A DNA stretch of 64,000 nucleotides from Pelomyxa schiedti (lineage: Eukaryota > Protista > Evosea): contig JAHLWZ010000053.1 of the NCBI GenBank assembly GCA_020536535.1, positions 1 through 64,000 on the forward strand, in the 5' to 3' direction. The translations under genes and the position numbers were made by a program. The notes beneath the pieces were generated by a model that did not search any database, was not told where the DNA came from, and worked only from the letters and a program-made list of their open reading frames with translations. Shown one piece after another: positions 2,936 to 51,143 of this stretch (position 1 is its first letter; each line of letters opens with the position of its first letter).

Positions 2936-5900
2936 ATGAGTGGACGGGGGAGACGAGGAGGATCTCACGTGGGAGATGAGGCCAAGAGTAACCTGTGTGC
3001 GGTTGTGGCTCTGTTACCTGAGTCTATGTATCACAGAGTACAACACCTAAGGGCGGTACATGACAAGTCCTTTGAGAGATGGTGCTTTACATCATCCTTT
3101 TTTTTTTTTTTTCACGTTCATTTTTTTGGAAAAAACCATATTTGCTAACTTACTGCTCTTACTCTTTTCACATCACAGGCCACCACACATTAATTTGTGA
3201 GTTTTCATTGTTATGGTGTTCATTTATTCCAATACCAATGTGACACAGATTGTATCCTTTTGTAAATGTAGAGGACATACCAACTGCTGTACCAAAACTT
3301 GCAGCGGCAGTGGCCACTACGAGTCCATTTGAAGTGTGCTTGGAGAACTTTTCGTACTTTCCACATAAAAACTCATTTACAATGTGGCTGGATCCTAAGG
3401 TGAGCCTTAATGATGTTACCACCGTTCAATGTGATCCTCATTTCGGGCTCAGCCTCACAAAGAAGTAATTTCCCTCCAAGCACGCTTGGAAAATGCTATT
3501 CCTATTTGCAATGATCTCTCCACAATTTCTGATGACGGATTTCATCCTCATGTATCAGTTGGGCAATGGGTATCTAAGGTAACCACTACCGTATAAACGA
3601 ATATTGAATCCTTTTAATTAAACTACACCTTTCAGGAAGCTCTCCTTCAGCAACTGGCTGACTTCAACTCACAGTGGACACCATTTTCTTTCACCATCTC
3701 TGCAATTTCTGTTATTACAAGACACACAAATGACTCATTCTCTGTCATATATAATATTCCATTTGGAGGAACACCCCAACGTGTAGCACAGGTTTTAAGA
3801 AACGCAAGGGGTTCTTTACCTGAAGCTGACACTAACTAGGCTCCATATTGTCCTTCTATACCACTGAGCCCTACTTATAAGTTTCATCCAATAACTAAAA
3901 AGTGGGAACCACTTGAAAATGGGGCATCTGTATCTCCTACTATTTTACCTTCAAACACAACAGCCTGTACATCCTCTTCCGAGACCAGGCCTAGTTCTAC
4001 TGTGACGACCACAGCCACCTCTACTACTACAAGTTCCACTACAGCACAGGACACAACAGCACCTAACAGACTTCGACTTGTCACATATAATGTTCTCTTT
4101 GACTTGTACGATGCAGAGTTAATCTACACAACTGATAGAATTCCTGCTGAGTTGTTACTGCTAAAGTAGAACAAATGCCTTGTTTTTTCTTGATAATTAC
4201 TGAGCCTCAGGAATACAAATGCCGATATTATTGGATTACAAGAAGTGACTCCGAATTTTTTACGCAGTATCCAAGCTTCCTTATATATATAAGATAAATG
4301 AATCAATCGATGAAAGCTAATCCATTCAAAGACTTGTTGGAACAAGATTGGGTTCGGCAAAATTACTACGTTTCAGATTCCCCAGCAAGTGCCACAATCC
4401 CATCCTACAGTCAAGTCCTACTCTCCAAATTCCCGTTCTCGACATCAATTCAAAGGTATGTCAAAAAATAATGGGGGAGACCAACAACTATCAGGCACTC
4501 CCTCTTTAAGAGAACACTTGTTGGAGACTTCAACATTTTTGGGCGAATATTACGAGTTAGTGTTGTGCATCTCACCAGTGACTACCAGCTCAAGAAAGAG
4601 AGTGGAGTAAACGTTAAACAACGCCGGAATGAACAATTAAATATTGTTTTCAACAATACACCTGGGAATTATAATGACATGGTTGCACTTTTTTCTTTCC
4701 TGCTGATCTAACAAAGTCAACTCAGATTGTCATGGGTGACTTTAATTTTGGGGAACGTGAAGGACTTGATGCAATAGATACCAAATTCTTTGATGTGTGG
4801 CAGGTTTTATTCCCCTCAAATTTCTATCTAGGATCTGTCATAACTGGAAACCTAGGCTGTGTGTCCTCAAGATCCCGGTTTTACTTTCGATCCCAGCCTC
4901 AATCCAACAGCTTGTCTTACCTCTGTGAAACCCCTCCCTGCTCGCTTTGATCGGATTCTGGTTCATTCTTTGCCCTCTTCTGGGAACTCTGCTTCTACAA
5001 ATAACTACCACTGGATTGCCAAGTCATGCTCTATGTTTGGAAAAGAAGCCTGCTTGACACTAGTAATTCTAAACTTTGTCCATTTTTGTTCCAACCTGTG
5101 CACAGTTTAACGGAAATGAAATCTTTCCCTCGGACCACTTTGGTGTGATTGGAGACTTGGAACTTGTTAAGGCTTCTGGAGATAATTTGACATTGTCAAA
5201 TCATCTCTCCCTAGAGCAGTATGGTACCCTCCTCGTAAACCGAATTATAACTCTGTGCAGATATCTCCAATTAGCTAAAGTATCTGAAACCGCAGAAGGA
5301 GCATCGAAGTACGAAAAATAACTTTAATTTGCATTTCAAATGATTTCCTCGTAGGCGGGAAAGTGCCATGGCGATTTTACAGCAATGCAGTCAGAAGTCT
5401 GATCCACCCGTGCAGCTTCTTGTAATTGGATCGTGTCTACTTGGTTGGGTTCCTTTGAATTTAGACAAACCACTCATATTCTTTGTAGGAGTGCAAGGAC
5501 AAGATACTGATATCGACTGTGTATGTGTTGGTGAGGTTCCAAAAGAACTATTCCTCACGAGGTTCGTTGAAACTCTGGTTGTCAACCCAAATATTCAGAA
5601 TGTAAAGGTATGCCTTCCACTACAAGCCTTTCTGAACTAAATTCAAACACTTAGTTAATTGCTGATGCACTGATTCCTGTTATAAGAATGAGGGTTCTAG
5701 GTTTTCAAGTTGAAATGCAATATGCCCATGTGCCAGGAGCTGCTGGTATTAACTTCAATACAGTAAATCCAGCCTCTATTTCTTGCGATTCCACAAGCCA
5801 GCTTTGTCTAAATGGTTCCTCTATGACAACTCCCAAGTGTTTCTTACATGAATTAGCATATTTCGACACCCTGTTCCTTCTCAAATCCATTAGTGATAAA

Positions 5901-7662
5901 GGATTATTTTCCTCTGTTCTCCGTGCAGTGAGACTGTGGGCCAAGGGTATGCCTGAAATAACGTTCTCTTTCCTCATCAATCAAGTTCGTGGATTATATT
6001 CAAACCGGTTGGGTTTCTTGGGAGGCTTTGCTTGGTCTTTACTTACTGCCAGAATATGCCAGGTTCCACTTCTCATGTGATATAAGCATCTCTGAGCCTC
6101 ATAGGTATCTCCAAACGATGATGCAGAAAAAGTTTTTGCAAAGTTCTTTACACTGTACTCCTCATGGAATTTTGCAGCCACACCTGTCACAATGATCGGG
6201 ACCTCTATTTCTCCCAAAAATGTATGGTGTATTTAGGGTTTTTCCCCACTAATATTTACCGAATAAGACCCCTGGCGAATTTATCCATGTGATGACGCCC
6301 ACCAAACCCTCCGTCAATGTTTGCAGAAACTCCACTAAATCAAACACAACTATACTGGTGGAAGAGTTTCAACGTGCCAAGTTTGATTGCAATCCTTCAA
6401 TCGTTTATTTAAATCACAAAAGAGACACTGTGAGACTTGTTCCATGGCATGAATTCTTCCAACCGTGGAATCCAGATCACGAGTTCTATGTACAAATCAC
6501 GTTAGCTGCCGGAAGTAGGGCTGAACTTATATCATGGTCCAACCACCTCGCTTATTTGAGTAATATGAACATCTTTCAGGGTGGGGCGTGTGGAGTCCCG
6601 CATTGTTTCTCTTGTAAAGCAATTGGAACAAGCAGCACCTGATCTTATTGTTCATCCCCTCACAACTCGTTACCATTCACAAATAGACCCTGATGCCTGT
6701 TTGTACTTGATAGGGTTAAGACGAACAAAGAAGGTAAAGGAAAGTTCTCGTACATTCCTAATTGACTAAGTTCAAAAAAGGGCGCTTCTATCGAGTCATT
6801 GGACCTTCTTCCTGCTATCCAGAAATTCGAGTATGAAATGGCCAGGGACGGAGGTGGTTGGGCAGAAAAAAGTATTACAATGTCCATACTTGCAAAGCTG
6901 CTCCCTAAGTTTCTATTCCTCAACCGTTTTTTCCATTTTGAAAACTTTCCAAACGTAGGGCAGAAAGTGCAATAGTGAGATTTCCTCGATTATTCCTAGA
7001 TAGTGAACTTCATGACTATGATGCGGAAAATGATTCATCTTGTATGCAGTGTACCCTCTGTAAGAAAATACCTTATCCATAACTCTGGCACAGATTGCGA
7101 CCGGCAGCGGGGCCTAAAAGCGGACTCTCATGAGGCACATGAAAGAAGGCAGCCAAGGGGAAAGACCCCACCGTCACGTAAAGGCAAAGCCGCTGCCACC
7201 TCCGCTGTCCCTGTAGCGACTGCCGCCGTACCATCACCCAAAAATTCAGCAGCAACGGCGACCACAGCAGCAACTGCCACAAAGGCAACAAAAGTAAGTG
7301 GCACAAAATCCAAGGGTGCAGCACCACCACCAGAAAAGAAAAAATTGAGGACTTCAGAAGATGTTTTCAACAGGATCAAGTGGGATCCAACCTTCAACTT
7401 GAATGAGTTCACCATGTGCTATGAAGATAGATTCCTTGGTAACCCTACTCACATCCATTTCATTTTAAATGGTTAACGACAATTAATAGGCCTCATGGAA
7501 GTCCCCGTGAATGAGTTCGACATGGAGAACATACCTTTTCATCGTGTGTGGCTGTTCAAGAGAAACGGGGAGATCGTGTGGGACCGCGAGAAACGGATAG
7601 ACGTTCTGTTCAGGTTCCTTTCTCCTTCCAAAAAGTCTTCACTCACTTCCCCCACAGTTAAA
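2936..7662 (+). CDS. Multidomain RNA-end processing protein: 2H phosphoesterase + EEP phosphatase/nuclease + poly(A)-polymerase-like nucleotidyltransferase + MJ1316/DUF504 domain
   Basis: 2H motifs WPPHINL and FHPHVSVG. EEP motifs LVTYNVLFD, IIGLQEV, VMGDFN, RFDRILV, FPSDHFGV. PAP motifs GSCLLG...DTDIDC, LRAVRLWAK..RGLYSNRLGFLGGFAW, WSGRVESRI. C-terminal LRTSEDVFNRIKWD...YEDRFLG..IPFHRVWLF..NGEIVWDREKRID. Confidence 0.85.
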
Positions 7663-8152
7663 CGTACACACTTCCGCATCCGTCGTATGAACGACCATTT
7701 TTGTGATTCTATCTATTTTTAAAAAAAATCATGCTTTTTCTGAAATGCCATTTCTGTGCAATAGTTGTTAGTTTTAATCAGAACGAGACCGGGTAACTGT
7801 CGCGGTCTGGAGGTTTGCGTGGTGGGGGAATGTGAGCGAGTTACTGCCTGTGTGATGTTCAGGAATCAGTGATTACGCTCGCTCAAGCCCCGTTTGCAAT
7901 TCACGAAGAACGAGGCATGTCGCGGGTGTCTTGATTGTAGCAGTCGTTCAGCCGATGTAGTGCCGTCAGAACGTAATGGCAAGGCGTCGACGCGGTGCCT
8001 CAACTACTTACGACATTGAAAATGGCTGCACAAAACGGGTTAAGATGTCGTTGCAACGCACGAACGCATTTAATGGACGTTCTTTCTTTTCTCTTTTTTT
8101 TACCCAAAAACCAACAAGTACTCGGCAACACCTCACCAAAAACAGTTCGCAA

Positions 8153-8851
8153 ATGGCAGATCAGGGAGAAAAACCATCGCCACCGCCTTATGCTGCGGCT
8201 TCCTCTCCGTTTTATTTGTCTTACGACGGAATAGCACCGTCTGGCTCCTCGTTTTATCAAGACTCCTCTAATATGCTAGGGCTACAAGAATCCAACGTGT
8301 TTCCACAACCAAATGGTCTGAACCTTACGGCGGAGACTACGTTTCCTTACACTGGCACATACGGGCAAGGGCAAATTCTATGTTCCACGTCATCCGGTTT
8401 GGCGAATACACAGCAAGGTGTTGGCACATCTTCTTTTCAACTCCCGCCATCGCAGCTTCCCTTAGTTCCGCCAATCAACGCCCCATCTACAAGTGGTAGG
8501 AAACATAAGAAGCAAAGTTCCGTGGAGAATGACGCTCAAAATCCTCTCGTCATGGGTCTGTTGAATCTCCTCCAGAAACAAATGGACCAACACAATACGC
8601 ATATCGAGAGATCACTGCAACTAGTCTCAACAGTGGTCAATTGCAACCACCGCCAGTCCCGTATCATTGACAATCTTACACGTAGGAAGAGGCTGCCAGA
8701 CCCCAGTCCCTCTCCCCTCACCAACCCTGAAGACAGTTACGAAAATTCTGACTCTGAGTCTGAACAGTTCAATGATGTTGGGGAGATTGCCCGTCGACCT
8801 GCGATGAAGAAGCCTCGACATCTGGCACCACCATCCAACAAAAGTTCTTAA
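8153..8851 (+). CDS. Intronless hypothetical protein with basic motif and helical/coiled-coil segment (ORF open from 7976)
   Basis: Uninterrupted ORF; ATG at 8153 follows an A-rich leader; contains GRKHKKQ and GLLNLLQKQMDQH...QSRIIDNL. Confidence 0.55.
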   Translation: MADQGEKPSPPPYAAASSPFYLSYDGIAPSGSSFYQDSSNMLGLQESNVFPQPNGLNLTAETTFPYTGTYGQGQILCSTSSGLANTQQGVGTSSFQLPPSQLPLVPPINAPSTSGRKHKKQSSVENDAQNPLVMGLLNLLQKQMDQHNTHIERSLQLVSTVVNCNHRQSRIIDNLTRRKRLPDPSPSPLTNPEDSYENSDSESEQFNDVGEIARRPAMKKPRHLAPPSNKSS

Positions 8852-41325: not shown

Positions 41326-43412
41326 TCACAGAGTCCAGGGTATCAAGTCATTGACAGAGAAGGTGTGTATGTTTTGGGGTTTCCATATTTCTACGGTGAC
41401 GGCGTTTGGCTGTGTCTCCCACCTTGTATCTTTGATTGCAACAGCTTCCATGACATCTTTCCCGCAAACGGCGTGTGGCTGGTCATACACTGTGTGCTTC
41501 CGCTCGGTAAACTCACTTCTCAAGTCAATCATGTAGCCTTTCTCCCAGAACTCCGTCAAGAGTAGTAGCACCAGTGTGGATGGTGGCATCTTTTGGCTGC
41601 TGGTTAGGGAGTAATTGTCGTCTGTATTTGTATTGCTGTGCCGGTGATGCAAGGGAATCCTCAACATTGCATAAGAGTCTACTGGCACATAGGCAAAGTC
41701 ATTCAAGTCACTCAAAACAGCTGACTTGGCGGAATGCCAAGACGTGGGGTTACATAAATGAGCAAGTGGGACTCCAATTGCTGAAACAAGCTCTCCTAGT
41801 GATTTTGACTTGACCTATTCAAAAAAATTGTGAGAAAAAAAAGGACAAAAGGCTGAGTTAACCAGCTCCCGCGCTGAGAGAGTAACATGCAACTTATCCA
41901 GTGGTGAGAATAGGGTGATGTTGTCCATTGCTGTGGTGCCAAAAGATGTAAAAATTGAAACATTTTCACTGTGGTACCTTGAAAAGTAGGTTATCAAAGG
42001 AATTGGAAAAAGAAATTTACTCGTGATGGTTGTGTGTGAAACTATAGTGAAAGTTGGTGTGGAACTTGAACTGGGCACAATGGGTTCTCCAATTTGAGGA
42101 TGTATTGTACAGTGCCATTTGAAGTGGGTGCGACGAACCCATCTTTATGCCAAGCACGTAGGAACTTGAACTAATTCTTACCTGCATGCAAGGAAGAATT
42201 AATGGCAGTTGAAAGAAGCGGATGGTTACATAAAAACTCCTTGTGGAATCTTCAGCGGTAATCGACATGTTGGAAGTTACTCGTTGTTTGATGTTCCAGA
42301 AGTCGGGAATAACCCCTGCTGACAGACAAATTACAGGCGCCTCTGCACTGCTGGCCATGGGTCTCTTTAATTCAATCTTCATTTAGTGAGAACTTAAGCA
42401 AAAACAGTGGTAAGTAGTCGCCAATATTTACAGGGAATTCTTTCTTGTAAAACGGAAAATCCGGCGCAACATGAACTTTACCGATCATTTGAGGTTCGGA
42501 GCTAAGGTCTTCTTCTACCAGCTACAGGTTCGGAACCCAAAAGTACATTTAAAGATGGGTAGAATTGTAGGAATACAAACTCCAATTGTGAGAGGACCAA
42601 GGTTCCCCCGTACAACAAACCTATGGTTCCTGTTTTGCAAAAAAAAAAAAAAGAAGTGAGAATAAAAAACCAGACGGTGCAACGAACCAAGTGGGGTCAC
42701 CCATGCATTCACAAGATGGAGTTTTGTGTATCTCCACGACTCCGGGAAATTGAATAGTACATGTTACGTCCATTAATACAGAGGTCGGCCGAGAGGGAAG
42801 AGACCGCGCACTGTGAGCGTATACCTCGTACATCACGCGAACAGTGCTGTGCCCACCAATTCGCACGGACGTGGTCGGATGCAGCGACGTCGAGCTGCGC
42901 TGCGACGCTTTGTTGCGACCAATCGCACTAGCCTCGGTCTTGGCAACGGCCGTCGCCTTGGCCACACTTTGCGGAGGCAGCGACAGCGCCCGCACGAGCG
43001 CGCCGGGGCCAGTGTCGTCCGCCGCCGCCACCGCCGGCGAGGCCGGCCTCGTCACAACGTCCTCGCCTGCGCCGTTGTCCGGCGGCTCCGGGCCCTTGGC
43101 TCCCGTGGGCCTGGTGGCGTCGCCGCTGTTTGCAGCAGGGGCCCCGGGGCCGCCGCTCGACGTGGGTGCACTGGCGCAAGAGGGGGAAACAGCCTTGCAG
43201 CTCGTCTCGGCCCAGCGCCGTAGGTGGGGCGTCGAATACTCCCCTTTCACGGTCTTGTGCCGCGGCGGTCTGGTTTGCACCCCTGTGGTCTCCGCGTTGT
43301 GGTGGTGTTTGTTCGGCGCAGGACCGTCTCTGCCGGTGTGATGATGCCTGGTTATGGGCTTTGAAACAATGCTCGCATTCTTGACTACGACCACAGAAGA
43401 CCCGCACCCCAT
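41326..43412 (-). CDS. Putatively N-myristoylated/palmitoylated C2-domain protein
   Basis: MGCGSS start; spliced YEVYAHSARSLP...DVTCTIQF...KTPS...DPTWNHRFVV..LTIGLVEED..PQMIGKVHV follows the C2 pattern. Confidence 0.65.
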
Positions 43413-43574: not shown

Positions 43575-46266
43575 TCAAGGTAGGGAATTAGTGGAAGTAC
43601 CAGGAGGAACAACAGGAGCAAGGGTCACCATAGTGGTATTGAACGTGGGTCCGCCACCCAGTGTCTGTGGTATTGGGCTGGTAAGTACGTTTTGCAGAGT
43701 GCCGCAGGTGCCGCGGGCCTCCTTTGGGCACCATACAACACCTGGGGGCATGGTGTCTGTTACGCGTGTGGTGAGTGTCACACTGCCCTGGTCATTCTGG
43801 AGTGTGCAGGAGCTGCCGTTGGCAATGTGGAGGCGCTCGGCGTCTCTTGGGTTGATGTCTGAATATTAGGCGAGCGGAGTGGGTGGTTTAGGGTGAATTT
43901 GGGAGGGAAGGGGACTTACAAACTGTGGGGGGAATTGGCCCGTATACGTGCTGGAATTGACTGTGAGTGTACTGTGGAACGGCACTGTTCAGCATAACGA
44001 ATGTGTTGGAGTTACGAGATGGAATAGGAAGTTGGACAGGCACTGGGCTTATCCCGGCAGCCGCAGCCCGTTGTGAGCTGAACTCGATTTTTCCAGTTGG
44101 AGTAGGGTAGTGATTTTTTGGTAGGCACTGTAGGGAAATGAATGCGCCATCAAAGAATGTAATAGGAAGGAAACTGTACCTTCAAAGAAACTGTCTCACC
44201 ATTAAAAAACCGTTCCATGTCTGCTGGAGATAGGGAATCTTTCATAGCAATTCTCATGGCCGCGCGAGGATCTTCAGTGATGCATTCATCAGTAATCCCT
44301 AGTCTAGATGCAATTTCTCGCATCAGCTGCACACAGGTTTTAAAAAAGATCAGATAGGAAAAAAAGGACTCACCCAGAGCTCATCACGAGATTCGGATAG
44401 TGGTCTGGCAATAGGCAGATTTAAACGAACGTAATTGTGAGTCCATGGAAGTACAACTTCTTCTTTCTCCAGAAATGAGGAAGCTGGCAAAACAACATTT
44501 GCGAATTGCGCCGATTCCGTCCAGCAAGTATCATGAACAACCACAAATACATCACTTCGTTTCAGCTTGTATTATTTCGGGTAAGCTAGCTGGTAATTGA
44601 CATTGAAGAGATACTCCTAAATGCACAGACTTCAAATCCGGAAGTGTTACTGCTGGATTCATATCTAAGTTAAATCAGTATCCCTTTTGGAAACCACTTA
44701 AACAGACTGAAGATAAAAATGAACTTAAATTCGCCTTTGCTCATAGCTTGACCAATACTTATCAAGCTGGTGACTTTAGAAGGCCCTTTCGTACCTCTCG
44801 TTGTTAAATAATCTCCGTCCACAGGGTAGGCAGATCCGTTCCTGTGCATCACTGTGAACACTTAGACTAACCATGTGATAGGAGGTGTACGAATAAAAGA
44901 ATCCACGGTGCAAGCCAAGAAGTGCTGGGATAAGAGACACAGCTCTTGAAGCCTCAGCTCCATAGAAAGATTTCTGAAATCCCAGACCAATCATGGAGGC
45001 ACTTGGTTTAAGTGACGCATATCTATGACAGTTAGGCACGGCAAACCGCTTGTAAGCACACAATTTTCCAAGACTTTCAATATCTGTCAATGGGATTCCT
45101 GTAAGTGAGCTTACGCGGTCTAGATCCCACTGCATAATCATTTCTTTGTACTCAGTAAAGCCAGTAGTGAACTCCGTTATAAATTCGTTATCTTTTGAGT
45201 TGCTTTTGAGTTTGAATAAGGTTGTCTGGAAGGCACACCAATCATATTGTTCTTGATAAGGAAATGCGCAATACCCAGAGCAAGCGCAGTATCAGTCCCC
45301 ACTGCAGGGTGAAGCCAAATGTCAGAGCCAGAAGCTGTCTCACTTTTTCTGCAATCAATGGTAACTATTATAGTACCATTTCGTTGTGCCTTGAAGAAAG
45401 GACCGAAGAAAGATATAAGATATTTAAGAACATCACACAACGAAATGGTTGCCTACCTGTTTGGCAAGTGCCCATGCGTGAATGAAACTCACAGCTGGAT
45501 TAAATCCCCAGAAAACGATTAATTTTTGATGAAGTAATTCTTCTGGCTTTGTTGGAATGGTAAATGCCCTGCAAACGAAGTTTGCACACCTGCACGCCGT
45601 ACTGGAGGCCATAGTGGTATTTTATCGCCGTAGCACCGGACATACTGCACAAGGTGTAGTCAGTCTAAAGGTTCATTGGTAAGAGATATGATGTCTGTAG
45701 AACGATACAGCTGCAGAGCCAATAGTATTCCACAATCTAAGAGCTATCATGGAAGTATATGCCCCTGCATTTCCAGCAAAGTCCTGATAACAGTTAAAAT
45801 AAACGGGTCTACTGTTCAACATGCAAGGGAAGGGAGGCGAACCAAATGCAAAACCGATTCAGGTCCATATGTCTCAATGGTCTTCTGCATGACAGAACAC
45901 ACTTTATCCAGGGCGTTCTGCCAGGAGCAGCGAGCGAGGGGTTCGTCCTTACTCTCCCGCATGTGAGGAAATCCAACCCTATTAGTAATGCGATTTTTGT
46001 GGTCCATTGACCCCCTAGCACACAAAAAGCCCTGCATCGTTGTTACACGGAAGGGAAAAAGAAGAAAAAAAAACCGTACTCTTGTTACGGGGTGATCTGG
46101 GTCGCCCTTCAAAGGGGCCAAAAGAACGTCGTCCGGTGCATCCTCAACAGGCAAAGTAGCAATTGACGTGCAAGTGTCGTAGCAATCTACGAGGGAAAAA
46201 CCGCAACTAAACGCCACATAATCAAAGATAAAGACAGTTACCCCGTGCACACGCAATGCGCCTCAT
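43575..46266 (-). CDS. Molybdopterin (bis-MGD, DMSO-reductase superfamily) oxidoreductase with N-terminal 4Fe-4S motif; about 14 introns
   Basis: MRRIACARDCYDTC...KGDPDHPVTRGFLCARG; TDYTLCSMSG; IVFWGFNP; IVTIDCRKSETA..DIWLHP..GTDTALALG; NMNPAVTLPD; FVVVHDTCWTESAQFANVVLPASSFLEK; PTPTGKIEF; INPRDAERLHIANG...VTDTMPPGVVW...TFNTTMV. Confidence 0.92.
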
Positions 46267-46562: not shown

Positions 46563-49500
46563 ATGGAGTTCACTGTGACACCGGTACAGCTGCAGGAGCT
46601 CGTCCGCCACAAGTACGTTACGTTGCGAGATCTCTTCCTTTCGAGTGGCAGATCCTTATTTTCCCTTTTTTTTTCTTTTTTGTTTGTGTGTCTCCTTATT
46701 TTGTTACGCACTCGTGGTGTTCTTGTTGCGACTGCTTTGTTAAGGGAATATTAACAATAAAAAAAAAAAAGGAAAGTGGAGGAGTTGGTAGCCTTGGGAG
46801 GATTGGAAGGATTGGCTGAGAAGTTGGGCACCCACTTAAAGACAGGTCTCAGCAAAGAAGAAGTCGACTCCAACTTTGCCCATCGACGCAGCGTGTGAGT
46901 ATCCCCTACTTTTGGCCGAGTCCTTTCTCATTTAAGTCTCTAAATCCACCTAGATTTGGTATAAATGTGCTCCCTGAGCCAAAGCACAAAAATTTTTTCC
47001 AACTGTGGTTCGAGGCCATCAAAGATTTGACCTTAATCATTCTTATCATTGCTGCAGTAGTTTCTTTGGTCCTCGGTCTTGCAATTCCTGAAGGTTAACT
47101 ATTTGTGGGCATAGCGGTATCTTAATATCACTCCAATGCAGACCTTGGCTACCAAGATGCCTGTCTAGTCAATGTAACGTACAGTGAGGATGAAGTCATC
47201 AGTGATCAACAATCAAGTAGGAGGAAAGCATCATGTAACTTTTATAATTTATGCTGCAATCCAAACTTCCAGGTTGGATTGAAGGAGCAGCCATTCTTGC
47301 TGCAGTTCTTGTGGCGAGCACTGTCACGGCCGGGAATAACTATTCAAAGGAGCGCCAGTTTCGTGCACTTTCTAATCAAGAAGAGCGTGACAGAACTGTC
47401 AAAGTCATACGAAAAGGGGAATTGGTAACCCTTTTTTTCTCTTTTCCCCTTCTTAATATGGCTTTGTTATTAAATGCTTCAACTTAAGGAAACTATTCCA
47501 TATGCCGAGGTAAATGTTGGTGATGTTATTGCGCTTGATACTGGTGACGAGGTTCCTGCAGATTCAGTTTATATATCTGGATTTGGTATAGACAAGCCCT
47601 ACTATCCATCTCTTATTCCCTCTAGGCATGAAGGTTGACTCGAGCAAGATGACTGGAGAAACAACTGATATGAAAATAAACGCATCCCGACCATTTGTCC
47701 ATCTTGGCTATAAGGTAAACTTTTTTGTGCATGGTTTTACCCTGACATTAAAACTAGCTTACTGATGGTAGTGGATACGTGTTAGCATGTGGTGTTGGAC
47801 AGCACACGGAATGGGGAAAGACAATGGAATCTTTACACGATGAGAAGCCTGACACTCCTCTTCAAGAAAACTTGGATGTGTTAGCTGGGAGTATGTTTAA
47901 TAACCTTCTTCAACAACTTATGGGAATCAGCAATTGGGAAATTTGGAATGAGTGTGGCACTGTTCGTTTTTATATTTCTTTCACTGTGGTGGCTTATTCC
48001 AGCCCTAACGTTCGTTGTGCAACTGTCCTATTACAATTGATGCTTTTTAGATACGAATGTGAATGGGTGTACGCTGACGATTACTGTGCTCCAGCTCCCA
48101 CCAATATCTCTTCATATGGTTCAGAGTACGTTTGCCCCAGCTACGACTGGTCTCAAGCTGTCGATCTTATTGATTATGTCATTATTGCCATTACTATTGT
48201 GGTGGGTACCTTCGGTTATTCGTTTATTCATAGACCTCACCACTTTGCAGGTTGTAGCTGTCCCCGAAGGTCTCCCGCTTGCTGTCACTATTTCTCTTGC
48301 CTATTCAATGAAACAAATGTACGCTGATAAGAATTTGGTGAGGCACTTAAAAGCTTGTGAAACCATGTCTAATTGCACAAGTATTTTCTTCTCTCAAGTT
48401 TTTATCCCTTAATACTCACATGATCAGACATTTGTTCTGATAAAACTGGAACACTCACGGAAAACTGTATGACGATTGTCCGGGTATGTTATTATTGACA
48501 AATAAAAAATTTTCATTTGTTTAATGCATTCCAGGGTTGGTTGAGTGGTAGAGACTTCCCTGAGGTACCTCCCAAGTTTGAGATACCCAAACATGTCCTG
48601 AGACTTACCACCGAAAATTGTGCTTTGAACTGTGCCTACAGTTCCAATCTTCTTCACAAGGAGGGCAAACCTGTTGTATGTTCTCTTTTTCTTTTTCCCC
48701 TCTCCAAACTCCAATTTAGGAAACTGTTGGAAATAAAACCGATTGTGCCTTCCTCATTTTTAGTGAAGCCCTTGGGGCCAATTATCATGAAATCCGTGAC
48801 CAAAATTCTGACAATATCTACCAGCGATTTACTTTCAGCTCCACAAGAAAGCGCAGTAATTGCTTAGTGTGGCTAGACCAGAGCAAAGGATTAATCAGAC
48901 ACTATGTGAAAGTAGGTCAAACTGAGATTAAATTACGCTCATTGAGCACAGGGAGCTGCTGAAATAGTCCTTAGGCGGTGTGCAAGTGTTCTTGATGCTG
49001 AGGGGAACCCTGCCGAACTTTCAGACGAACTACGCGCAAAAATCGAGGAAGAGATTCAAGGTTATGCTACAAAGGGTTTAAGACCATTATGCCTTGCCTT
49101 CCGTGACCATCTTGCTGCCGATCCATCCAAGGCTATAGAAGTTACCCCAAAGGAGGGGAGCTCTGTAAGTAGTAGACAACTTCAGTAAAGAATTTACTTG
49201 CTTCAGTCAGCAGATCAACATCAGGAAGGCGAGACTGAAACTATTGAGGACGCTTTCTCAACGGCAGAGCCCAACGTAGTTATGGATGACACTAAAGCAG
49301 TTTATGAAACTGCTCCCGATACAAACTTAACACTGTATGCAATTTTGGGCATTCACGACCCTCTGCGACCAGAGGTTCCTGCTGCTGTGAGGGCTTGCCA
49401 AGATGCAGGGATAACTGTGAGAATGGTAACTGGTGATAGTATCCTTGGGAAAAAACTTCCTTTTCCATCCATGATTGCCTCTGTTTTTCCTTGACTTACT

Positions 49501-51143
49501 AAGATCTCCTTACTGCCGAACATATTGCTAGGGATTGCTTCATTCTCAAGCCAGGAGGTTTAGCTATTGAGGGACCCGAATTTGCTAGCATGTCCAAAAA
49601 GCAACAAATTGAAATTTTGCCAAAACTTCAGGTTTTGGCTAGGTCATCCCCCACAGACAAGAAGAACCTAGTCAAACGGTACACTTTTTCCAATTCTTCT
49701 GTCTTTCTAAGCCCCGCAGCTTGATTAAACAAGGTGAAGTTGTTGCTGTGACAGGTGACGGTACAAATGACGTACAGGCATTGAAGAAGGCCGATGTTGG
49801 ACTGGCCATGGGTCTTAGAGGGACGGACATTGCCAAACAGGCTGCAGGTTTTTACTCCATTTCACCATTTTCCACTAAGTAGGACAGACATCGTTATCTT
49901 GGATGACAATTTCAAGTCAATTGTGAAGTCAGTGATGTGGGGAAGAAGTGTCTATGACAACATCAGAAAATTCATCCAATTCCAGCTTACAGTCAATGTC
50001 GTTGCTCTTGCTGTTGTAGCCATTGGAGCTGTAACCCAGAAAGGAGCTTGTTTGAAAGCAATCCAGCTTCTCTGGGTGAATATGATTATGGATACAATGG
50101 CCGCCCTGGCGTTAGGTACTGAGCAACCAACAGCAGCCCTTCTCAAACGCAAACCGTGAGTGGTAGTGAAAAAGGAAATTTTCCGCACTCATCTCCCTTT
50201 AGTTTTGGGCGCTACGACCGACTTATTTCCAATTATATGATACGAAATATCGCTGTTCATGCAACCTATCAGGTAGGGTCTATGTTAAATACTTCGATTT
50301 TTCTGATGTACTGTTTGAAAATAGTTAGCTGTGCTACTTACTCTTCTTTATGCCGGACGGTTCTTCCCTTGGCTGAGTGTGGATTGCGCCTACACTGATG
50401 TAAATGATCCTTTGAGCACGACTCTTACTTCAACCTGCTGTTTGGGTAATCTCACTATTGTCCTCATATCATACCGATCCAAAACCAAGAAAACTCTGAG
50501 GGAGTCGTCTACCCTTCGGATACATATTGCCCTGATGGGGAGCACCGTGCTTTTGACTCCGAGATTAACGAGCAAACTGTGGTACTGCAGACAGTGATAT
50601 TCAACACCTTCGTGTTTTGTCAAGTCTTCAATGAAGTAAACTCCCGTAAAGTCAACAATGGTGTGTTTTGCTTTGAGATGTGAGTTCTGTTAATGCCTCC
50701 CCCAGAGTGGAACGTATGGGAAAAAATTTGGACCAACTGGATGTTCCTACTCATTGTAGGTATTACAGTGGTAATCCAGACACTTATCATTGTATTTGCT
50801 GGAGACTGGATGAGTGTAGCACCTTATCCAGGACTGAATCTTGCACAATGGGTCACTTGTCTCGTGCTTGCAGTTATTACAGTACCTCTAGGTAGGTCGC
50901 CACCTTAGATACTTCATTGGACTTGAATCAACACTAATCCTACAAATAAAAAAAGGGCTGTTGTGCACACAAATACCGGTACCTGCCTATGAACCCAAAA
51001 AGTTCAAAGAAGATGACGGTCCCAGCATCTGGGAAAAATGCAAGGCAAAACTCGGTTTCACTACACCAGAGTCCCAAGTACTTCTGCCACACAAAGACAA
51101 TGACAAAGAGAAAGAGAAAGAGAAGTCGGCAGAGGAACCCTAA
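46563..51143 (+). CDS. PMCA: P-type IIB Ca2+-transporting ATPase (PMCA-like)
   Basis: [82 protein letters not shown]. Confidence 0.96.

Follow-up and report, generated by a model that had tools for sequence, protein, structure and literature searches.

The one widely known eukaryotic protein with a MopB fold is NDUFS1, in its NuoG-type C-terminal domain; this complex I subunit is mitochondrial (endosymbiotic) in origin and no longer has the pterin site. The gene analysed here, Pelo_718 of the amoeba Pelomyxa schiedti, lies at positions 43575..46266 on the minus strand of a 64,000-nucleotide (nt) window, which comprises positions 1 to 64,000 of contig JAHLWZ010000053.1 (98,841 bp; assembly GCA_020536535.1). 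Its product, like NDUFS1, is a MopB-fold protein encoded in a eukaryotic nucleus, but, unlike NDUFS1, it keeps the ligand Cys and the binding motifs. According to molybdoenzyme reviews (2022, October 2026), eukaryotes have only enzymes of the sulfite oxidase family and of the xanthine oxidase family, and the dimethyl sulfoxide reductase (DMSOR) family is "exclusively found in prokaryotes"; the original prediction, made from the letters of the DNA alone, gave the same account of the field. The results presented below suggest that Pelo_718 is probably a functional nuclear gene of prokaryotic derivation, encoding a stand-alone cytosolic member of the DMSOR (MopB) superfamily, a molybdenum- or tungsten-bis-pterin (Mo/W-bis-pterin) enzyme of a clade of its own.

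The gene itself is already in the literature. Pelo_718 is listed as "formate dehydrogenase (FdhF)" in Table S2 of Zahonova et al. 2022 (BMC Biol, PMC8887013), where a NifU-FdhD fusion (Pelo_10620) is linked to it and it is proposed that, "uniquely in eukaryotes", some NIF proteins may activate formate dehydrogenase. A comparative paper of 2023 (PMC10711303) repeats this link and reports the fusion in Mastigella eilhardi as well. Thus, the claim of the original prediction that the enzyme had gone unrecognised does not hold: Pelo_718 (KAH3767403.1) was published as an FdhF homologue together with the NifU-FdhD fusion, and the Mastigamoeba orthologue is also annotated. Neither molybdenum, tungsten nor pterin appears in the main texts of the protistology papers on the gene (PMC8887013, PMC10711303, PMC10579272), and its meaning for the cofactor field is not drawn out. 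New here are the reclassification away from FdhF, the case for one old origin of the intron-sharing copies, the delimitation of a large clade, and the attention drawn to MobA-like and FdhD genes, as against early-pathway genes missing from the published tables. Should the protein carry the cofactor, the use of a bis-pterin-dinucleotide centre would be demonstrated for the first time in eukaryotes, namely in the Archamoebae.

Gene structure and nuclear location

Three-frame translation of the minus strand revealed a run of stop-free pieces that read as a molybdopterin oxidoreductase. In the spliced gene model, 43575..46266 comprises 15 exons and 14 GT..AG introns of 39-67 nt each, with the start codon at 46266-46264 and the stop codon at 43577-43575 (662 codons plus stop); the G-C content is 0.47 in exons and 0.41 in introns. 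The spliced product is identical over 662/662 residues to KAH3767403.1, "formate dehydrogenase [Pelomyxa schiedti]", and the assembly annotates the gene at exactly 43575-46266. The fragments available from approximately the first 400 residues of the published Pelo_718 match the spliced product in every case tested. In addition, the gene was aligned with a splice-aware protein-to-genome aligner of our own, for which the Mastigamoeba protein served as the sole guide. This alignment also placed 14 introns, of which 13 are identical to those of the model and one differs by a 12-nt shift of the donor site. The final number of introns is therefore exactly 14, where "about 14" had been proposed. A chance resemblance is excluded, as alignment of the spliced product with prokaryotic homologues extends over the full length at E = 0.

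The closest database match to the last exon was found on a 201-kb contig from ENA (ERZ21831265 ctg81487l; also present in Logan ERR12015700/ERR12015701), hereafter L001, with a G-C content of 39% and gene calls that are short and fragmented, betraying introns. Spliced alignment recovered a complete orthologue at 5849-8369 on its plus strand, 56% identical to Pelo_718 and with 13 introns of 36-49 nt. In the comparison of intron positions, which covered P. schiedti and L001, these 13 introns match P. schiedti introns 1-9 and 11-14 in both position and phase, and the exon lengths are equal or differ by multiples of 3. The absence of intron 10 from L001 reflects either gain in P. schiedti or loss in L001. 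Moreover, in Pelomyxa sp. JSP (53% identity), a transcript assembled by Trinity runs as one continuous open reading frame (ORF) through the sites of introns 8-14.

Prokaryotic symbionts (Syntrophus, Methanoregula, Vesiculincola) are abundant in P. schiedti and have molybdoenzymes of their own, so contamination or a chimeric assembly from such a source has to be considered. However, Pelo_718 contains 14 spliceosomal introns and is flanked on both sides by eukaryotic genes on a single contig. The annotated neighbours on this 98.8-kb contig include a P-type Ca-ATPase, a prenyltransferase alpha subunit, and leucine-rich repeat (LRR)/RING and cofilin-like genes. An orthologue with the same introns lies on the independent eukaryotic contig L001, and the identity to any prokaryotic protein found is at most 47%. 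Contamination is thus refuted in practice, its likelihood being negligible, and the assignment of the gene to the nucleus in the original prediction is borne out.

Motifs, fold and prokaryotic relatives

All of the DMSOR motifs named in the original prediction were found, and its coordinates coincide with the annotated gene span. The N-terminal [4Fe-4S] (FS0) site reads C6-A-R-D-C10-Y-D-T-C14 ... C48, with all four Cys invariant in the family alignment. In the gene model, exon 1 (46242..46266, 25 nt) holds the start codon and the first cluster Cys, C6 (codon 46251-46249), and is separated by intron 1 (46241-46187; phase 1, 55 nt; common to L001) from exon 2 (46080..46186), which completes C-A-R-D-C10-Y-D-T-C14 (codons 46184-46170), a form of the family-invariant CxRDCxDxC, and continues with GDPDHPVTR. 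The fourth cluster Cys, C48 (46022-46020), lies in the GFLCARG motif of exon 3 (45843..46031), where the Molybdopterin domain begins according to the gene model and Pfam. Exon 5 (45590..45664) encodes TDYTLC138SMSG, in which C138 (codon 45649-45647), followed by Ser139, is by alignment the putative Mo/W ligand: it is the last residue of T133-D-Y-T-L-C138, does not vary within the family and is matched in alignment by the Cys that ligates the metal in the Cys-type formate dehydrogenases (FDHs) 7BKB_D and 7QV7_S. A pterin-dinucleotide binding strand-loop with IDCRK was located in exon 7 (45239..45389) by profile search and the gene model, and the family alignment placed the invariant H319-R320-G-F-F-Y, from 44910, in exon 9 (44891..45022). 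The Molybdopterin domain ends in exon 12 (44374..44565), which carries VVVHD...LPASSFLE (gene model, profile search), and exon 15 (43575..43858) encodes domain IV (Molydop_binding) and the stop codon (gene model, Pfam).

The Pfam scan of the protein returned Molybdopterin (PF00384; 123.4 bits against a cutoff of 24, residues 62-457) and domain IV, Molydop_binding (PF01568; 55.8 bits against 26.8, residues 563-644). The same scan gave no match to PF04879, though this domain is matched in the prokaryotic relatives. Single exon pieces compared with PDB, Pfam and NCBIfam gave matches at the superfamily level only. In tblastn searches against plasmids, no match was obtained for the longest exon piece, and the C-terminal piece gave only distant DmsA and FdhF matches.

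The AlphaFold model (pLDDT 93.3, pTM 0.92) has low pLDDT at residues 21-30, which correspond to an 8-residue Pelomyxa insert after the cluster motif. It superimposes on solved DMSOR structures with TM scores of 0.83-0.84 and Z scores of 33-38 over about 615-635 residues. The highest Z scores were obtained for FDHs (38-35; top 38.2-37.9) and the nitrate reductase NapA (37-35; 37.1 for that of D. desulfuricans), followed by arsenite oxidase (34.7), arsenate reductase Arr (34.1), acetylene hydratase (33.8) and Psr (33.2). With values so nearly equal across DMSOR types, fold searches do not tell the subfamilies apart. The protein has no N-terminal extension, the cluster motif starting at residue 6, and published predictors indicate no organelle targeting for Pelo_718 (Zahonova et al. 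2022, PMC8887013); both agree with the earlier remark that no targeting peptide is visible.

The closest relatives are prokaryotic proteins of about 650 residues that share 44-47% identity with Pelo_718 over more than 640 residues, for example TET71309.1 of Bathyarchaeota and an Anaerolineales sequence (L005). They are named "molybdopterin-dependent oxidoreductase", "anaerobic selenocysteine-containing dehydrogenase" (a COG label) or, after the best hit, "formate dehydrogenase". The signature of this clade consists of C-x-R-D-C-x-D-x-C (Cx3Cx3C), an invariant Cys in "(S/T)LC(S)", and "HRGFFYSN". For a census, two family-specific peptide patterns were searched in GTDB genomes (one per species); at least 600 stretches matched and 587 were confirmed by tblastn. 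By this pattern search and tblastn, the clade occurs in no fewer than 587 GTDB species, all of them anaerobic. The hosts include Anaerolineales, Desulfobacterales, Syntrophobacterales, Bacteroidales, Bathyarchaeia and Thermoproteota, and furthermore Archaeoglobus, Methanomethylicia and several Asgard lineages. To judge by its sequence, Pelo_718 belongs to this clade, which has no characterised member.

At 78 prokaryotic loci, no conserved neighbour was found in more than 12, and neither an Fe-S beta subunit nor a membrane anchor was present. The genes most often found next to it are IMPDH and PurH, encoded on the opposite strand (divergent, in related Bathyarchaeia), as well as nitroreductase, short-chain dehydrogenase/reductase (SDR) and CoA-transferase genes. 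As there is no conserved partner gene, the enzyme appears to be a stand-alone cytoplasmic monomer, and the operons give no clue to its function.

Pelo_718 has the length and the invariant motifs of its prokaryotic relatives, which constitute its true family, and keeps 89% of their conserved columns. Among 85 prokaryotic members, 76 columns show a conservation of 95% or more; 89-93% of these are retained in the eukaryotic copies, as compared with 49% in E. coli FdhH. The P. schiedti protein keeps 68/76, including C6, R8, D9, C10, D12, C14, C48, C138, H319, R320, G321, F322 and Y324. From the conserved residues kept, the eukaryotic copies look functional. They differ from the prokaryotic proteins in having introns, and Pelomyxa differs also in the 8-residue insert and in DCRK in place of DPR.

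Five eukaryotic sequences of the family were compared: those of P. schiedti, L001, Pelomyxa sp. JSP and Mastigamoeba balamuthi, for which a gene model exists under the EukProt name "putative formate dehydrogenase / nitrate reductase", and a metagenomic ORF, P0048 (412-2277 on the plus strand of contig L086; JGI metagenome 3300028241), which is sister to the Mastigamoeba protein with 50% identity. In accordance with the lateral acquisition that had been proposed, tree analysis with prokaryotic relatives placed the five copies as one clade among mostly bacterial sequences. This clade received a Shimodaira-Hasegawa-like approximate likelihood ratio test (SH-aLRT) value of 95 in a quick maximum likelihood tree (98 rows, LG+C20 PMSF), and ultrafast bootstrap (UFBoot) and SH-aLRT values of 99 and 98, respectively, in a careful one (63 rows, LG+G4). 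The eukaryotes are nested in a clade (98/96) of Chloroflexota, Desulfobacterota and Bacteroidota with a small Thor-like archaeal branch; their immediate sister is poorly supported (37/11). The sharing of 13 of the 14 introns with L001 makes the transfer an old one. On the simplest reading, the gene was transferred once, from an anaerobic prokaryote (probably a bacterium) and before the split of Pelomyxidae and Mastigamoebidae, and gained its introns afterwards. An ancestor of the Archamoebae would thus have acquired the gene from an anaerobic prokaryote, and spliceosomal introns would then have colonised it.

P0048 was also considered as a prokaryotic donor. It was rejected, since its contig has eukaryote-like poly-Q/N/T and the introns forced in its alignment are spurious. 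The contig is 2.4 kb long, with a G-C content of 62% and poly-Q/T/N coding sequence upstream, and the ORF lacks the Fe-S domain and keeps 79% of the family-conserved residues. The ORF probably represents a mastigamoebid copy from the environment that may be truncated or degenerating.

Formate dehydrogenase label, other functional readings and cofactor supply

The FdhF equivalog model TIGR01591 scores the P. schiedti protein at 219.2 bits against a cutoff of 666.25, the Mastigamoeba protein at 159 and the prokaryotic relatives at 205-263. No curated NCBIfam family reaches its cutoff, either for the amoeba protein or for eight prokaryotic relatives. In profile searches against solved structures, FDHs (279-305 bits), acetylene hydratase (278) and the polysulfide/thiosulfate reductase PsrA (275) were nearly tied. 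The FS0 spacing is Cx3Cx3C, in contrast to Cx2Cx3C in FDHs. Ser139 stands in place of the FDH His (His141 of FdhH), and Ser, Leu, Val, Thr, Asp or Ala is found there in the 13 family members displayed. The FDH loop 'NPxRGQNNVQG', which bears Arg333, is a 24-29-residue insertion relative to the family profile in 3/3 FDH alignments and is gapped in the MAFFT alignment. Thus, 'FdhF' is probably a misnomer, a name taken from the best hit. Lacking both the catalytic His and the Arg-bearing loop of FDHs, the protein is unlikely to follow a canonical FDH mechanism, and formate is presumably not its substrate.

The preferred reading is that of an active Mo/W enzyme outside the described FDHs, for which we infer the cofactor content and the electron partner as follows. 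The N-terminal [4Fe-4S] cluster (C6, C10, C14, C48), near the surface, would exchange electrons with a soluble carrier (for instance ferredoxin) on one side and with the metal centre on the other. The latter would be Mo- or W-bis(pyranopterin guanine dinucleotide) (bis-PGD), with Cys138 as a ligand. Formate is a possible but not a favoured substrate, the substrate may also be an oxyanion or a compound of sulfur, and non-redox chemistry has a lower likelihood. Regarding cofactor supply, for which the original prediction implied a pathway of the organism's own, the gene table of Treitli et al. 2023 (PMC10579272) lists Pelo_18822 (KAH3722472.1) as "molybdenum cofactor guanylyltransferase, EC 2.7.7.77", which is of MobA type, and Pelo_8692 (KAH3759499.1) as "molybdenum cofactor sulfurtransferase". 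The same table contains Pelo_6878 (KAH3761291.1) as "formate dehydrogenase FdhF, EC 1.17.98.4", called a formate hydrogenlyase in the main text. By accession arithmetic, this gene is distinct from Pelo_718 (KAH3767403.1), and it was not among the relatives found for the Pelo_718 family. Pelo_718 and Pelo_6878 are each cited as 'FdhF', in separate papers and without cross-reference.

Several points weigh against the reading of Pelo_718 as a bis-PGD enzyme distinct from FDHs. Transcript support comes from the related species Pelomyxa sp. JSP and from the annotation of the authors, not from P. schiedti junction reads. MoaA, MoaC, molybdopterin (MPT) synthase and MoeA are without amoeba rows in the published tables (PMC10579272), the genome itself not having been searched. 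The metal, the cofactor and the substrate are all inferred across the clade. In one of three profile alignments, Cys138 falls two residues upstream of Sec140 of FdhH (1AA6), and the invariant His319-Arg320 of the family might stand in for Arg333. The best sequence and structure matches of Pelo_718 remain FDHs, and FdhD, which in E. coli is an FDH-specific sulfurtransferase, occurs in Pelomyxidae, which fits a formate dehydrogenase (molybdoenzyme review; PMC8887013, PMC10711303).

The last of these points favour a Cys-type formate dehydrogenase or CO2 reductase (FdhF-like), which would oxidise formate made by pyruvate formate-lyase (PFL) or reduce CO2 and would be matured by the NifU-FdhD of Pelomyxidae. 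The best matches in NCBIfam and, by sequence, in PDB are FDHs, as are the top structural Z scores (38.2-37.9), a Cys lies at or beside the FDH ligand position, and the amoeba is published to have PFL and to make formate. With FdhH (E. coli FdhF, 1FDO/1AA6) and the Cys-type FdhA/FdhF (7BKB_D, 7QV7_S), Pelo_718 has a four-domain fold in common (Z 35-38, root-mean-square deviation (rmsd) 2.5-2.9 over about 600-620 residues). They further share one N-terminal [4Fe-4S] site, a cytoplasmic location, a similar size and the lack of a twin-arginine translocation (Tat) signal. However, the identity is about 20%, Pelo_718 has Arg where FDHs have Lys after the fourth Cys, the score is one third of the FdhF equivalog cutoff, no His follows the ligand in the family members examined and the loop with Arg333 is deleted. 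The scores of acetylene hydratase and polysulfide reductase differ from those of FDHs by no more than 30 bits, and Nap lies within 1-2 Z units of FDHs. Moreover, the second P. schiedti 'FdhF' (Pelo_6878, EC 1.17.98.4) is an alternative client for FdhD, and the reports of the NifU-FdhD fusion are confined to Pelomyxidae (P. schiedti, Mastigella eilhardi) and do not extend to M. balamuthi, which has the enzyme. A formate dehydrogenase of this type is hence considered unlikely, if not markedly so.

Another redox enzyme of the Cys-ligand branch, such as a nitrate, polysulfide/thiosulfate, arsenate or other oxyanion or S-oxide reductase with ferredoxin as a donor, is possible, though somewhat doubtful. 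The structural Z scores of D. desulfuricans NapA, arsenite oxidase, Arr and Psr and the PsrA profile score all point in this direction, as do the hedged Mastigamoeba annotation ('formate dehydrogenase / nitrate reductase') and the 'SLC(S/T)' context, which is like the SLCTAP of PsrA. The D. desulfuricans NapA (2NAP) is likewise a monomeric Cys-ligand enzyme of about 720 residues with one [4Fe-4S] cluster (rmsd 2.4). Yet Pelo_718 is without a Tat signal, the NapA models score 69-72 bits against cutoffs above 900, and the active-site motifs differ. PsrA (2VPW), although it has a Cys ligand and scores equal to those of FDHs, is Tat-exported with partner subunits. None of the curated reductase families reaches even a quarter of its own cutoff, Pelo_718 has no partner subunits, and there is no pointer to any particular reductase substrate.

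In acetylene hydratase, the catalytic Asp13 adjoins the cluster. The invariant Asp residues beside the cluster Cys of Pelo_718 (D9, D12) recall this arrangement, and the enzyme of Pelobacter acetylenicus (2E7Z) is also a stand-alone cytoplasmic monomer with a Cys ligand, scoring at 278 bits next to 279 for FdhH. A non-redox enzyme of this kind, with W/Mo as a Lewis acid, would accord with the absence of electron-transfer partners; a scaffold without cofactor, of the kind seen in the MopB-like domain of NuoG/NDUFS1, was considered along with it. The Asp positions, however, are not those of acetylene hydratase, whose Z score, like that of PsrA (33-34), lies below those of FDH and Nap. NuoG models score very low on the relatives (about 40-77 bits), and the ligand and cluster Cys are strictly conserved, contrary to a cofactor-less relic. 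Both of these possibilities are very unlikely indeed.

A further reading retains an active Mo/W-bis-PGD enzyme with an undescribed, non-formate activity, but has the amoeba only finish the cofactor. Because the amoeba would lack MoaA, MoaC, MPT synthase and MoeA, it would scavenge a pterin precursor or Mo-MPT from obligate symbionts or prey, and the MobA-like, FdhD-fusion and sulfurtransferase genes would serve for finishing. The Syntrophus and Methanoregula symbionts do have genes for MoaA, MoaC, MPT synthase and MoeA (PMC10579272). This combination is quite improbable; if true, it would represent the first eukaryotic DMSOR-family holoenzyme together with cofactor dependence on endosymbionts.

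Remaining exons and flanking genes

The other exons of Pelo_718, all on the minus strand, complete the gene model. Exon 4 (45709..45783) is given by the gene model and the Mastigamoeba-guided alignment, and exons 6 (45457..45546) and 8 (45062..45191) by the published protein and the same alignment. Intron 5 (45589-45547) is as in the published model. Exons 10 (44708..44841), 11 (44615..44664), 13 (44180..44326) and 14 (43920..44127) follow the gene model. Comparison with L001 identified intron 10 (44707-44665) as the sole intron without a counterpart there.

Intron 8 (45023..45061) is 39 nt long, in frame and free of stops, and is supported by the published protein and by an L001 intron at the same place and phase. 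An alternative model of 14 exons and 678 residues, in which this intron is read through and a wrong 34-nt intron is included, was ruled out by the published protein and the L001 orthologue. Retention of intron 8 would add 13 residues (CAYKRFAVPNCHR) with the reading frame kept, whereas its L001 counterpart, at the same site, is out of frame.

Directly downstream of the stop codon, the minus-strand stretch 41326-43412 is GC-rich (0.585 at 43-44 kb), and long ORFs, present on both strands, overlap there. A 591-residue protein without a Pfam match is annotated in it by NCBI, and the Pfam scan of the largest ORF of this stretch (263 residues) was empty. On the upstream side, the opposite strand carries a multi-exon PMCA-type P-type Ca-ATPase gene (46563-51143, plus strand; 1119 residues according to NCBI). 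This gene and Pelo_718 are divergent, their annotated ends lying about 300 nt apart.

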